This document shows, piece by piece, positions 44,501-53,500 of a stretch of DNA of 64,000 nucleotides. This stretch comes from Lepidodermella squamata (lineage: Eukaryota > Animalia > Gastrotricha): assembly GCA_047495785.1 (NCBI GenBank), contig JBLDXI010000048.1, forward strand, positions 806,001 through 870,000, in the 5' to 3' direction. The notes below the pieces were generated by a model. The model made no database searches, had not been told where the DNA came from, and saw only the letters and a list, made by a program, of their open reading frames with translations. A program made the translations under genes and the position numbers. Position 1 is the stretch's first letter. Every line of letters begins with the position of its first letter.

Positions 44501-47500
44501 GTTTCACTTGCAACAGCTAGAGAATAAGAAGTCGGAAACAGCTTAATAACACCATGGCTCTACTTACAGGTAGCGCAAGTAGCACCCGTCCAGCCAGCGT
44601 CGCATTTACAAATATCGTAGCCAATGCAAGTGCCGCCGTTGTAGCAAGGTGGTACGCATTGAACTGTAACCACAAACATTCATTGTGGCAACGTTTTTAT
44701 CAATTAACAAGCACCTGTGAAGCCCCGACAAATGTCTTTGACCTTGATTAGCTCATCCAAGGACAATGCCCTAGAGTGTATTGACGCACAAGCCATCGAA
44801 CCAACACTGTAGTAGTCCCCAGCCCAGCTTTGTCCGATGTAAAGCCGATCCGAAAGTACAGGCACGTTCGTCGTGGGCAAAACAGTCTTCCCTGCGAAGA
44901 TTTCTTGGCAAAAAATGCCCAGAGTTCTAGTAGATGCGTCGTAGGTCATCGCCACGAATTCCCAGCGGTTGTTCAGAGATTGATAGCATGCAGGGTAGTA
45001 TTCAGCCGTGGATCCGAAATACACCAAGAGACTCCCGCCGTCATATCGAAGTAGGCTCCCATACTGACCGGTATTTTGAGCCGGGTAGCTCGGCTTTACC
45101 CATTCAAATAGCCTTGCAGCACTCGTCATTTTCATCCAGCAAGCAATTGTGAAAGACCCTGTGCCGAGGTTTACCTTGGGAGTGTCGAAATACAGAGATC
45201 GCCACGGCCTAGCACTGATCTGAAGGTTCACCCCGGTATTAGCTCCATTATACGGCCCATTCACATATTCGAAATCTCTTGACATTATACCATGAACTTC
45301 GTTCGGAGATGCGTCCTTCTCACCGTATTCATATGACAACGGCCAATAAGCGACCAGGCCCGATACAGTTGTTAGACTTTGATTTATGAATACCTGGTTA
45401 ATTTGGACTGAAAGAGGCTGATTGAAAGCTCTCTAAACACATCGTCGGAGAGAAATACTTACGAGAATCACAGGTTGGTGGCATCCAAGGTGGGACACAT
45501 TTGCATAGATTCATTCCGACACAAGTTCCGCCGTTTGAACACGAATCACAGTTAACTAGGTGAGGACAGATGAGAGTTCCATTGGGTAGGAGCATGTTAT
45601 CAACTCACCTGTAAAGAGTTTACACGTTTTCCGTACCGCGAGCAATTCCATCTTGCCCAACGATGAGCTGTACATTGAAGTACAAGCAATGCTGCCTGGA
45701 AATGATCCGTTGGGAGAAATTTGTGACCTGGAAACAAGTTGTTGGTCAGTGTAATTATTGAAAACGCTAACATACCCAAGCCCAAGGCTGAAAGTATTCA
45801 TGAAAGTAGGATTAGCAGGGAGGGTCACTGATGCAGTTGTGAAGTAATCATCGCAGAACCACCGCAAAAGCTTCGTTGTGCTGTCGTAAGTGAGAGCGAT
45901 GAATGACCAGGTTTGCCACACGGTGCAAGTCATCATAAGAGTGTTAGTCGCCACACCGCTCGCCATGGTATTCACCTGAACCTGGTTCGTTCCAAGAACT
46001 GACAGCTGGATAGAATTAATGCCGTTAGGGAAGTATTCGAGGATCGGCTTGTTCGTTCCAGTTTGGTAGATGTACATAGCCATGGTGAATGAGCTGGTTC
46101 CGAAATTTAGTTTCGGCGAGAAAATTCGAAGGTAATGGGTTGTGTTCATTGTCACAGCAGAGGCAGCCATTGTTTTAAAAGGTCCAGTAGTGTAGATAAC
46201 ACATGCGACTGGCGTGCCGTGAATTTGGTTTGGTCCAACATCAAGATGGCCATATTCACTGGTCAATGGCCAGTAAGCAGCTGTGCTAGGTAGGCTTGCT
46301 ATGGCGTTTTGAACATAATCCGTATTGCTAGCAACTGGAAGGAAGAGAAGATTACCTTTAGACCTTTATATTTGTATGGTATAACATGAGTAAAGAGTCT
46401 ATATCTGAACGGAGCCGGCCGAGATTTACGAATCGGAGAGAGTCGAAGACGAGTGGAGATGAGTAAATCGAGTACGGCGATAATGTATGAATCGAATTAT
46501 TCGCCCCTGGATGATCTCATCCATTCAAAGAAAGTGCCGAGTACTAGTCTATCAAAGTTCGTTTTAAATATTTAACCCTTTCAGTGCCGAAGGACATATA
46601 TGTCCTTCTCTGCAGAGAACAAGAGCAAATTAATAATAATATATTTTATACGTGGTACCCAGGTATATATTATCGCATATGCGTGCGCAAACAATGGCGA
46701 CGCGCGCGCGTGTGTGTTGCGTTTGCGCTCGCCTCGAAGCGCGTGAGCACGCGGGACGTCGTTCCGCCCTCCTCGAAGCGCGCCCGCACATGTTATAAAT
46801 CCGTAACAATCGACTTGAGTCAGCACCATAACCAATTTTTGAGCTCGAAAATAAACAACTTTGTTGTAGTAAATTTTTTATTTTTCGTCACGACGTCAAC
46901 AGATGAGCTTTCAAAACTTAGAAAAATACGGAAAACATCGTTCATTTTGAAGGAAAAACGGTAGCGAGCCGGCTTCGACGACAATATTATTATACAACAA
47001 AAACAACTTTGAAACAACACAAAAAAATAAATTTCTATCTAGCTACAGCAGAAGCGACGAAAATTGAAGAAAATTCAAGATCACTTGGATGGAAAATACA
47101 CTTTGTGGTGCCAGCGTTCAGAGCATTCGCCTACGTGTAAGGCTGGTGGGTTGCCGCTAGCATCGACGGGGCAAACCAGGCACTCGTAAGATGCCTTGGG
47201 TCTCTTGCACTGGACGCAAGTCCGTCGACCATTGTCCGGGATTTTTGTTGAGAAGTGAAGCGGAGGTCGCGCATTTTCTACCGAGTCTGCCGCAGCTGCG
47301 ACGAAATTTCGCAGTTCATCGGACTGTTGAGGTTCAGGCCCGACCATGAGTTCAATGCAAGCGATCCGAAATTCGAGCCGGGTCATCTTGCTGCCCGGGT
47401 TTTCCATCATATACATCTCGTAAGCATTCAGCATACTCCATTCATTTACATGATTATACAGCGGCATATACCATTTATAATGCTTCCTGTCGTTACCGTA

Positions 47501-50500: not shown

Positions 50501-53500
50501 ATGTCGCCGGCGTCTCGGCTCGATTCACTGCTGCGTCGACCTGTCTCGGCTCGTCGTGTGACCGCGACACCATGCTCGGCTTTTTCTGGTGCGGTGAATT
50601 TGCGAAAGTGCGCCCTAAAATTAGGCGCGCGCTGTAATTACCGGGCGGAACTTGCGCGCGCGGTACCAGCACAAGACGAGGTGTAATTACACGCGCGGGT
50701 GCGCGGCGGGAATTTCGCGCGCTCGAATTTCAAGTGTGCGTGCGGGAGACGTGCCTGGAGATAACAAAAATCCGGAACAATAAAACGATTCAGTTCAATA
50801 GGCATGAATTATTTCGGAATGTGAAGATAAGTAACAGGAGTGAAACTGAAACATTCAAACAAGAAATTCAAATTCGAAATTTACGAGGGTTTGAATTATG
50901 TTCGCGTCAATCTTAGTCGCCTATCTCCTTCTTGCGACCTCGTGCTGCCTGGAGATAGAAGAAATCGCACCTACTCAAGTGATGGCCGGCCGGTACTACC
51001 TCGAGCAGATGAAGGCCAAGAACAGTGACTGCTTCAACAACTGGCTGGAAACAGCTCAGAAAAGTTGCAATAACTATCAACTGGGTGCCTGGCAAAATCT
51101 CGCCCACGCCGCCTTGCGCTGCTGGTTGTCTGCTAAAAATTCTTCAAAAGTTGACAATTGCACATCCGCGCAGCCGCACGAGACTGTTTCACAAGTAGTT
51201 TGCCTGAAAAGGCTGCTTGACCCTGTAGAACTGCTTCAATACGGGTTGTATTTAGGAGAATCCAAAGACATCTGCTCTTTTCTTGTCTTCTTCAAAGAAG
51301 ATGCTTCGCCGCTTTTCACACTAGCAAAAAATGTATACGATTCAGCAGTAGATTGCTTTCCTATCGATGGCTTTCTTTTCGATATCATGCTATCGATAAA
51401 AAATTCTACTCTCTTTTGCGCTATAACTTCTCAGTTTCTTCATATCACTGAGCTTGAATCGTCATTCTATCGATACCGATGCTCATTTTTTATTTTTTTC
51501 ACTATTGCGCTAACTTTATTTCGCCGCAAACGTTACATTTTTTCCTTGGGCTTTATTGCTCTTCTTGAAAGCAACGAATAACGAGACCGTGGTGAACAAT
51601 CGTGCTTCGGTTCGAGCCTTGCCATCCGCGCCAGCCAACGGCAAAGCGCCACCTAGGAAGCGCGAAAAGCGATCGACGGCTGTGAGTGAAGACGACTCAA
51701 TTTTTTTTAAATTGGGCGATTATCGCCTTGAAAATGCGCATTTTCAAAAACTGCGTCGTAAATACGCCAAAAAACCTTACAAATTCGCGAATGCGCTTGT
51801 GCAATTTTTTGAGTCACATCAGAAAACCCCGATATTAGAGGATAAAAATTTCATTGACGACGTAGTCACTTTGACGGTGCAAAATTGTCATCTGAATTCT
51901 TTGATCAGGACTGCTGTACGTAGAAATATCATCGACTGTCGTTGGCATAAAAAAAAATATGCTGAAAAAAAGCAAGTAAGCAAACAAAAAGGTAGGAGCG
52001 CAACTATTTAGCGCGCTGGTGAAAAAGCAATCGATATGAATGTTGTTGTTGTTGTTATGATGTTTCGATATAAATCTAACTGTTTACTTCGTTTTTTTGT
52101 TGGTTGTTTTGTGAAGATTCATTCATTCGATTTTTGATCTGTCGTTTTACCTTTTTCATCACCTGTTGATTTGAATAAAATTTGGGAAAATATGTGAAAG
52201 TTGTGTTTTCTGACCCGGCTGTCGAAAAATAATGCATAAATTGTCATCGCCCTTTTCAGCCCGGTACAAGCCGCTGTTTGACGAGTTGCGCAACACACGC
52301 AATGCGCGCATTGATTCGCGCTCTCTCCACGCGTATTTCGTGTTTGCACAAAGGATAAGTAAACAATAGCAAAAGCCGAAAACCGAATTTCACCTGCGAA
52401 ATACAAATAGCTAATGAAAAGGCTTGATTTACTGCAGAGAATAAATTCTCGGCCGAGAAAATAAATTCTCGGCCGAGAAAACGTCGGCACGGAAAGGGTT
52501 AAGTGTCGGAGCGTAAGTTATATTCTAGAAAAGCATACATATTTAATGCGGTTGCCTATCGATTGGGCAACTTTCTTATTTATTAATCGCAGACATGGTA
52601 AAAATATTCCTATGGCCGGTTCAATTTGACTATTTTAGCAAATAGGGCAGCGTGAGTCACGCTAAACGCTAAACCACCTCATCTACACTAGGAAATCGTG
52701 AAAATCGCGAAAAGATAATAAGATTGTTGAGAATAAAAACACAGAAACGTAGAAAGCAGCAGGGAAATGTGATGCTACTCAGGGAGTTGAGATGAGGGAT
52801 TTTCCTGGTTTTTCCCCAAGCGGTGCTTTATTATTAGCTTACTCAGCGAGCATTGAGGCCCTGCGAAGCCGGCTGGGCATTGACAGACGTTGCTCGCAAC
52901 ACAAGTTCCGCCATTCGAGCAAGATGGAGAGCAAGAAGCTTTAACCATACAATAAATATCATAATTCATAACAAATTTATGTCGTGCCAAACTCACGAAC
53001 AAATCGTTGACATAACGATTTCACCGTCAGGAGCTGGGTAGTGTTCAAAGAAGCAGTATAGACAGCCGCACAAGCAAAATCAGCCTCAGCCAAATTAGTT
53101 GTCCCAATCCTAATAAAATGTCAGTGCAGTTCAAAGAAATTGCGACTTCGGTCGTCCTACCTCGTGCCTATATACAGCGAATCACTGACATCAGGCATAC
53201 TTGTAATGGAAAAAGGAGATGTCATGGTTGAATCACAGAACATGGTCGTTTTCATTATAGCCTTATCAAAAGTCAACGCAACAAACTGCCAGCCGCTATT
53301 CAACGCGCAGGACATGTTGTAGATACTGGTGTCTGAGGTGAGACCTCTGAGGGTGTTCGGGGATGGGTTCTGCCACAAATAGGCCCCATAAGAACCACTT
53401 GAAGGCTTATACTGGAAAAATGGCATATTTTTCGTCTGCCGTAGGCGAAGCCATGTTGCCAAAGTCCAAGACGTATTCATATTGACTTGCGACGAATTTA

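Follow-up and report, generated by a model that had tools for sequence, protein, structure and literature searches.

The stretch of DNA analyzed here is a 64,000-nt window from the gastrotrich Lepidodermella squamata (Gastrotricha; assembly GCA_047495785.1, contig JBLDXI010000048.1, positions 806,001–870,000 of the forward strand), and all positions given below are those of this window. It contains a piggyBac transposon that spans 46572–52502 (5,931 bp) with TTAA on both sides and that encodes, in addition to its transposase, two head-to-head genes, here termed cargo A and cargo B (Table 1). The original prediction, made from the sequence by itself, had described a TTAA target-site duplication, 15-bp terminal inverted repeats (TIRs), and about 3 kb of extra sequence holding two open genes. 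These features are borne out: TTAA is present at both ends, the TIR is 15 nt long with one mismatch, and both cargo genes are open and read as intron-bearing. The element is a real, autonomous, low-copy piggyBac that is apparently still mobile. Its size of 5.9 kb is unexceptional for an animal piggyBac, and its unusual feature is the extra coding content. Animal piggyBacs of 1.23–9.51 kb have been reported, described with single open reading frames (ORFs) (PMC10813416), which corrects the earlier expectation that a typical piggyBac measures about 2.5 kb.

The inverted arms at 46572–46590 and 52484–52502 are 19 nt long with TTAA included and are 95% complementary. The TIR proper, CCCTTTC[A/C]GTGCCGA, starts with the CCCTT motif, which is the commonest TIR start among piggyBacs (PMC10813416). 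An 18-nt end pattern occurs at two sites in the 64 kb, namely the two ends of the element, compared with 0.08 sites expected by chance. No second copy or fragment of the element was found elsewhere in the window, an Rfam search of the element returned no match, and the 21-nt right end had no exact match in metagenome contigs or in IMG/VR viral contigs.

The transposase is read from five exons on the minus strand (49203–48742, 48686–48547, 48447–48206, 48152–47572, and 47509–47081), separated by four GT–AG introns of 55, 99, 53, and 62 nt, and the joined frame contains no stop. Database searches with the spliced transposase, as with spliced cargo B, were made exon by exon. Exons 1–3 match the Pfam family DDE_Tnp_1_7 (PF13843) with E-values of 1.8e-25, 7e-12, and 6e-12, and exon 4 matches it only below the curated cut-off (E 0.029; 14.1 bits vs. 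22.4). Exon 2 aligns with residues 245–287 of the T. ni piggyBac transposase (6x67) over LTIDEQLLGFRGR, a region in which the first catalytic Asp, D268, is conserved, and the motif GGVDAIDQ (GGVDxxDQ) aligns with its third-Asp counterpart in piggyBat. Exon 3, which is Pfam-aligned, contains the second Asp (FMDNFY); for this Asp, a search of solved structures gave no piggyBac match. In exon 5 the pattern CxxC-x10-CxxC-x14-C-x4-HH is visible, and no Pfam profile for a Cys-rich domain matched it. The claim of an uninterrupted, spliced transposase with three catalytic aspartates (DDD) is thus upheld.

Ahead of the third Asp motif, the transposase has an insertion of about 105 aa, acidic and rich in Ser, that is absent from piggyBat. 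This Ser/Asp/Glu-rich insertion lies at 47646–47877 (exon 4 residues ~92–169), where an 80%-identical copy of the element, described below, skips 230 nt; it looks like a fast-evolving disordered loop within an otherwise constrained enzyme. Relatives of the transposase recovered with an exon-sized query are 34–36% identical, and no cargo homolog was found at their loci. One of these, a distant piggyBac locus on an ENA metagenome-assembled contig, carries a transposase fragment that is 34% identical, with neighbors that match Phospholip_A2_4 and, weakly, rve and Endonuclease_7; neither cargo A nor cargo B has a homolog there.

Table 1. Features of the piggyBac element, with positions in the 64,000-nt window and the basis of each call
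Feature	Position	Strand	Basis
Left TTAA target-site duplication	46572-46575	.	Read directly; matches of other run contigs begin exactly here, with unrelated flanks
Left TIR CCCTTTCAGTGCCGA	46576-46590	+	Inverted-repeat and pattern search
Left subterminal perfect palindromes GAAGGACATATATGTCCTTC and TTCTCTGCAGAGAA, abutting the left TIR	46589-46619	.	Palindrome search
piggyBac transposase gene, five exons, 617 aa, DDD motifs, Cys-rich C-terminal tail	47081-49203	-	Splicing and Pfam
Candidate motif (promoter or binding), TCGAWGCGCATGACT, in two copies upstream of the transposase start	49260-49307	.	Repeat search
Tandem array of the 12-nt unit CAGAAGGCAACG (three copies), immediately 3' of cargo A	49650-49687	.	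Repeat search
Cargo A, two exons, 224 aa	49689-50419	-	Splicing, codon score
Divergent intergenic region between cargo A and cargo B, 478 bp	50420-50897	.	51-56% GC; GCGCGC and TGTAATTAC motifs
Cargo B exon 1	50898-51531	+	ORF list, signal peptide by hydropathy, alignment of diverged copy
Putative 40-nt intron (GTTACA...GAAAG) joining two cargo B frames	51532-51571	+	GT-AG join
Cargo B exon 2: PPRKREKRS, resembling a nuclear localization signal, and BEN-like helical domain	51572-52011	+	ATG-less ORF, codon score, structure searches
Subterminal repeats of the right end: perfect palindrome TTCTCGGCCGAGAA twice, 20 nt apart, and a partial third copy	52432-52479	.	Repeat and palindrome search
Right TIR, reverse complement CCCTTTCCGTGCCGA	52484-52498	-	Inverted-repeat and pattern search
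Right TTAA target-site duplication	52499-52502	.	Read directly

Cargo B appears in the ORF list as a 227-codon ORF that starts with ATG (50898–51581) and a 151-codon ORF in another frame (51556–52011). Because the latter lacks an ATG, its translation would need an upstream exon, and a 40-nt GT–AG join of the two ORFs yields a predicted product of 357 aa. The donor at 51532 pairs in frame with acceptors at 51571, 51616, 51634, 51646, and 51691, giving fusions of 317–357 aa. The product begins with a signal peptide recognized by hydropathy (>1.6 from residues 1–5 onward). There follow a helical part with six Cys residues (45, 57, 75, 88, 102, and 126), three N-glycosylation sequons, and a short hydrophobic segment (residues 195–208) with basic residues on both sides. 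Cargo A consists of exons 50419–49973 and 49916–49689, joined across a 56-nt GT–AG intron. Its product, which has no signal peptide, opens with a Ser/Thr-rich N-terminus. About 32 hydrophobic residues come next, then RRRPP and a tail rich in Pro; the C-terminus is an AT-hook whose core, KRGRGRPRR, is the canonical R-G-R-P flanked by basic residues. The AT-hook tail of the original prediction is therefore confirmed at the level of the motif, and the design said to be common to both products—a part in the lumen or outside the cell, then a hydrophobic segment and a basic tail—can be seen in the sequence. When host ORFs of the window with Pfam support were used to train a simple codon log-odds model, that model gave the annotated frame its best score among the six in each of the four cargo segments and scored the non-coding parts of the element negative throughout, a signal that partly reflects the mere absence of stop codons.

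Other copies of the element were sought in one public DNA-type sequencing run of the same organism, in which 91% of the element's sampled words are present. Contigs of this run were placed on the element at a likeness of at least 80%, and the other copies are known from one summary table. A contig of 3,036 nt is near-identical over 46684–49731. In several contigs the match ends at 46572 (n = 3) or at 52502/52503 (n = 4 and 3) and the contig continues into flanks that are unlike one another. Because these contigs stop matching exactly at the element's ends while their flanks differ, the ends are correctly placed and the family occupies several sites; identical ends at several genomic sites are what marks mobility in the piggyBac superfamily. 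Word depths of approximately 128, 78, and 69 over the interior suggest a handful of interior copies.

Another contig is 8,674 nt long and matches 47877–48354 (78%), 48542–48689, and 50969–51279 (81%, no gaps), on one strand and in order, with further short matches at 47588–47646, 50543–50594, 50664–50743, and 51505–51530. The distance from transposase to cargo B is 2,239 nt in this contig and 2,280 nt in the window. Two of the short matches (50543–50594 and 50664–50743) show that parts of the intergenic region can still be aligned, and the last matched piece stops one base before the proposed cargo B donor; within cargo B exon 1, 311 nt align at 81% identity without an indel. A diverged sister element thus shares the architecture of transposase, spacer of about 2.2 kb, and cargo B. 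Since this copy is collinear at approximately 80% identity, the cassette is older than about 20% DNA divergence, and a recent nested insertion is very unlikely. On these limited data, we infer that the cassette is an old, co-mobilized part of the lineage and not debris. The proposed check for other copies with both cargo genes had a divided outcome: the family is multicopy and cargo B is present in the diverged copy, but cargo A was not matched there at the 80% likeness threshold.

Two further observations concern the right end. The last 175 nt (52328–52502) have a summed depth of 932, compared with 128 in the interior (about sevenfold), and three contigs begin to match at 52328, which suggests either many short derivatives or a related family that has only this end in common. 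One contig (depth 97.5) joins 51818 to 52266; this deletion derivative lacks 51819–52265, which comprises the end of the cargo B tail and the 3' region.

Selection was gauged from those differences that were listed and placed on the reading frames (40 of 274). Thirty of these are substitutions in the transposase, one of which (47813, nonsynonymous) comes from the near-identical contig; the 29 on the diverged copy divide into 20 synonymous and 9 nonsynonymous changes, with three of the 9 falling in one codon. Of the 6 variants listed for cargo B, 4 are synonymous and 2 change the residue conservatively (T89S, D261N), a pattern suggestive, on limited data, of a gene that has been kept open. Cargo A looks less constrained: run contigs show a 6-nt in-frame deletion at 50292, within a Thr run, and a variant with a disrupted frame. 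The possibility raised at the outset that the cargo ORFs decay neutrally is therefore tentatively countered for cargo B, with its mostly synonymous variants, but not for cargo A, with its frameshifting one.

Sequence searches did not connect cargo B with any known family. For exon 1, a word-indexed search of 5.8 billion proteins found no relative, an exhaustive phmmer search against 1.84 billion representative proteins gave zero matches at E ≤ 0.001, and nothing was found in JGI metagenome loci, in PDB sequences, or by exact-product look-up. Pfam reported nothing relevant for this exon at E ≤ 1, with no Tht1/Kar5 match. By Atlas features, cargo B lies near KBP_C helical proteins (0.88), a resemblance at the level of composition that is a lead and not a sign of kinship. 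An AlphaFold model of exon 1 made without an alignment consists of short helices of 8–20 residues with a predicted local distance difference test score (pLDDT) of 45.4; searched against AFDB Swiss-Prot and the Atlas shapes, this poor model returned noise and no Kar5 or GEX1. For cargo A, Pfam reported nothing on exon 2, which encodes the AT-hook tail, and the Atlas feature neighbors, at the level of a lead, are TMEM154, opalin, glycophorin, and UL132, a herpesvirus envelope glycoprotein. The resemblance suggests a mucin-like single-pass protein by class and not by homology. No parent gene for the cargo was recovered: there is no paralog in the 64-kb window, and cargo B and its tail have no homolog in the protein collections searched. 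Cargo A and cargo B are lineage-specific orphans, and they are not recognizable Kar5/GEX1/Brambleberry genes.

The tail of cargo B had been described as BEN-like, a proposal that finds weak to moderate support in structure and none in sequence. Pfam reported no family for the tail (51556–52008) at E ≤ 1, the BEN profile PF10523 included; phmmer recovered no BEN chain from the PDB at E ≤ 10, and the word-indexed search found nothing. The top Atlas score was 0.50. A single-sequence AlphaFold model of the tail forms a beta hairpin and four helices (pLDDT 55.5). In a Foldseek search of the PDB with this model, the BEN domain of NACC1 took ranks 1–2 (E about 2), and a second look with VIA gave the same domain a Z of 5.1 over 90 residues. 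A VIA scan of 48,161 chains that was independent of Foldseek placed the BEN domain of BANP at rank 1, that of BEND3 at rank 7, and that of NACC1 at rank 41, with Z of 4.9, 4.3, and 3.5, respectively, and coverage of the whole domain in each case. BEN domains thus come first in two independent searches, with weak scores. On this modeled evidence, we lean slightly toward the tail having a BEN-like fold. BEN-domain DNA binders (BANP, NACC1, BEND3, Insensitive) would then be its closest structural counterparts, as the best matches of the model with full-domain coverage, and the DNA motifs that such proteins recognize, for instance TCTCGCGAGA, are short and often palindromic; the cargo B tail differs from them in having no sequence-level match and in scores that fall within the range of helical noise. 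We know of no BEN protein with a signal peptide and a membrane anchor.

The element is rich in sites that a DNA-binding protein of this kind might recognize. Of the 13 perfect palindromes of at least 14 nt in the window, 6 fall within the element. The TTCTC-N4-GAGAA form of the left-end palindromes is seen again at the right end, a further palindrome, CAATGCGCGCATTG, lies at 52300–52313, and a related copy of TCGAWGCGCATGACT is present at 46734–46748. The palindromes at 46606–46619, 52446–52479, 51728–51747, and 52300–52313 are, as judged from their sequence, candidate binding sites of the BEN-like tail. The BANP BEN domain has its optimum at AAATCTCG within TCTCGCGAGA (PMC10206803), and the right-end repeat reads AAATTCTCGGCCGAGAA, which resembles the BANP target; we regard this likeness as a coincidence and not as evidence. 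The palindrome at 51728–51747, TTGAAAATGCGCATTTTCAA, is a perfect one of 20 nt that lies within the coding sequence of the cargo B tail itself, and ATGCGCAT-type motifs akin to it are also found at 49260–49307, 52300–52313, and 46734–46748.

Taken as a whole, the cassette of this autonomous piggyBac is read here, with a probability of about one in two, as an old, co-mobilized set of orphan, membrane-anchored DNA binders. Judging from their sequence features, both cargo products would enter the secretory or endoplasmic reticulum (ER) membrane system and turn their basic tail toward the cytoplasm or nucleoplasm; cargo A would extend a long Pro-rich linker that ends in the AT-hook, and cargo B would present the patch that resembles a nuclear localization signal and then the BEN-like fold. 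The likeliest mechanism, itself still rather improbable, is that the products are element-encoded DNA binders held at the inner nuclear membrane and that the cargo B tail recognizes the palindromic repeats at the element's ends (TTCTC-N4-GAGAA and ATGCGCAT-type), a role that would parallel that of the second DNA-binding proteins of Harbinger or En/Spm. Less probable again is the full form of this idea, in which the lineage keeps its membrane-anchored kit (the AT-hook, and the BEN-like tail on palindromic ends) in order to tether transposon DNA or chromatin to the nuclear envelope. Such tethering might, for example, bring the element into germline or zygotic nuclei, help it evade silencing, or bias its transmission when pronuclei or karyomeres fuse; both the tethering to the nuclear envelope and the bias in transmission are at this point purely conjectural.

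Several observations weigh against reading the cassette as a set of membrane-anchored DNA binders. Transcription, the 40-nt intron of cargo B, and the fusion that it creates are predictions. The hydrophobic segment of cargo B, at about 14 residues, fails a 19-residue hydropathy window. For the tail, the BEN scores (Z 4.3–5.1) lie within the tool's stated noise range for helical models, the model has a pLDDT of 55.5, and no BEN domain emerged from AFDB-cluster or Atlas shape searches, nor from Pfam at E ≤ 1. The Atlas neighbors of cargo A are sialomucin-type proteins of the plasma membrane. One cargo A variant has a frame-breaking insertion of 19 nt at 50362, and cargo A is not among the pieces matched in the ~80% copy, for which the likeness threshold was itself 80%. 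Finally, the selection counts draw on a fraction of all differences, and for cargo B on six variants, with P about 0.04 under a neutral expectation of 1:3.

Some of these same points would suit a possible, though less probable, account in which cargo A and cargo B are neutral passengers: host or foreign DNA that was captured once, by transduplication or gene capture, and brings the element no benefit. Under this account, the youth and low copy number of the family would explain why the cassette still looks open. Gene capture by DNA transposons is common (PMC6431247), the cargo contains no domain known by sequence, the derivative that lacks 51819–52265 exists, and cargo A has both its frame-broken variant and its absence from the matched part of the diverged copy. 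Against this account, the layout has endured over approximately 20% divergence, as have the coding sequence of cargo B and stretches of the promoter region that the two genes share, and over that distance the transposase shows clear purifying selection; the 311 nt of cargo B remain free of indels; and no parent host gene appears among 1.84 billion proteins. A different, quite improbable explanation has the products acting away from chromatin, as surface or ER glycoproteins, or after cleavage, as regulators released by proteolysis in the manner of ATF6 or SREBP. It would account for the sialomucin-like and herpesvirus-glycoprotein neighbors of cargo A and for the classical signal peptide and three sequons of cargo B, but it is difficult to see why the two proteins would expose a canonical AT-hook and a BEN-like fold outside the lumen unless these contact DNA, and no protease site or release motif was identified, none having been searched for.

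The original prediction had also likened one product to a karyogamy protein and suggested an action on pronuclear fusion. The family of Kar5, GEX1, and Brambleberry is characterized by a signal peptide, a Cys-rich domain (CRD) with six Cys, one to three coiled coils, and two to three C-terminal transmembrane segments (PMC4291462; PMC7586128). That cargo B is a shortened fusion factor of this type, and that the cassette favors the element's transmission by influencing the fusion of pronuclei or karyomeres, appears very unlikely, although a distant kinship with the family is possible. Cargo B does have a signal peptide, followed by six luminal Cys within 82 residues (45–126), comparable to C56–C141 of the yeast Kar5 CRD, and a C-terminal hydrophobic segment. 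But the agreement ends with the signal peptide and the Cys count: no sequence similarity is detectable, either to Pfam Tht1 at E ≤ 1 or by phmmer in the 1.84 billion representatives; the Atlas features point elsewhere, to KBP_C; and neither the AFDB Swiss-Prot nor the Atlas shape searches recovered Kar5 or GEX1, although the model used was poor. The luminal part is about 175 aa of short helices, with only about 70 residues between the last Cys of the cluster and the hydrophobic segment, which leaves no room for coiled coils, and none is present; one weak hydrophobic stretch of about 14 residues, below threshold, stands in place of the two to three transmembrane segments; and the protein measures about 211 aa before its tail, compared with roughly 500–600 aa in the family. 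The label "karyogamy-like" has no support from sequence or structure searches and should not be propagated short of a profile-based test, and this negative outcome is itself useful.

Least credible of all is that 49600–52100 represents an independent transposon nested in an ordinary piggyBac, an outcome that the original prediction had itself named as fatal to its reading. A weak, AT-rich inverted pair (49405–49422 and 52174–52191; 18 nt, 83% complementary) could be taken for the ends of such an insertion, yet it has no adjacent target-site duplication and is one of 27 similar pairs at chance level. Pfam detected no second transposase, reverse transcriptase, or integrase in the region, and the ~80% copy preserves the order and spacing of transposase and cargo B. 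A nested insertion of the cassette was accordingly rejected, given the collinear diverged copy and the lack of ends of its own with a target-site duplication.

PiggyBac, a major tool of genome engineering, is considered to carry a single gene. The element described here resembles the canonical members (T. ni piggyBac and piggyBat) in its TTAA duplication, CCC-type TIRs, and asymmetric subterminal repeats, and in a DDD transposase in which D268 lines up with the T. ni sequence and which has a Cys-rich C-terminal tail; unlike them, it has two more intron-containing genes, amounting to about 2.3 kb and diverging from an intergenic region of their own, as well as the ~105-aa acidic insertion in its transposase. 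A literature search that was not exhaustive found no small piggyBac with accessory genes. The PIF/Harbinger Myb-like partner, TnpA of En/Spm, and MURB of MuDR are second element-encoded proteins that bind subterminal repeats. By analogy, the present element may work likewise, with the differences that those systems belong to other superfamilies and that the candidate binders here are membrane-anchored, their end binding being hypothesized from the palindromes. Pack-MULEs and Helitron captures likewise hold foreign coding sequence between transposon ends, but theirs are usually fragments of identifiable host genes in non-autonomous copies, whereas the cargo here consists of complete, spliced-looking genes without an identifiable parent, in an autonomous copy, at least one of which persists in a diverged sister. 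Teratorn of teleosts, the cargo-bearing piggyBac already known, is fused to an alloherpesvirus (41–182 kb; PMC6431247), whose recognizable genome is its cargo, and similarly mobilizes non-transposase genes as one unit; in contrast, the cargo described here measures 2.3 kb and has no detectable viral homology (by Pfam, and by comparison of the right end with IMG/VR), or any other.

If the two extra genes have indeed been kept over approximately 20% divergence, they would show that piggyBacs, like Harbinger, CACTA, and Mutator elements, can evolve accessory functions. A DNA-binding fold on a membrane anchor would, if true, represent an unusual interaction between a transposon and the nucleus, and the hypothesis that the BEN-like tail binds the element's subterminal palindromes is directly testable.

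Short tandem arrays add a minor feature to the element. The 12-nt array listed in Table 1 has one unit fewer in a run contig (a 12-nt gap at 49650), and a second microsatellite-like array, four copies of the 8-nt unit TTTCAAAT, occupies 49488–49527; both arrays fall in the interval that separates the transposase start from the end of cargo A.

The element itself has minus-strand ORFs that encode Laminin_G_3 and EGF domains to either side of it, and it probably lies between host genes, or within an intron of one, in a repetitive extracellular-protein array. Across 26000–64000 the minus strand carries a long series of ORFs with domains of the Laminin_G_3, EGF, and Sushi types (30374–31291, 39275–40279, 42858–43406, 44707–45339, 45559–46266, 52778–53002, 53160–53795, 60792–61655, and 63043–63753), which corresponds to a large repetitive extracellular-protein gene or array. 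Farther from the element, the minus strand carries an intronless aldo/keto reductase ORF (4949–5899; E 2e-56), at 15393–18984 a P-loop ATPase_2-type ORF that adjoins an 884-codon ORF earlier labeled NLR-like, and a cytochrome P450 exon (20479–21246; E 2e-64).

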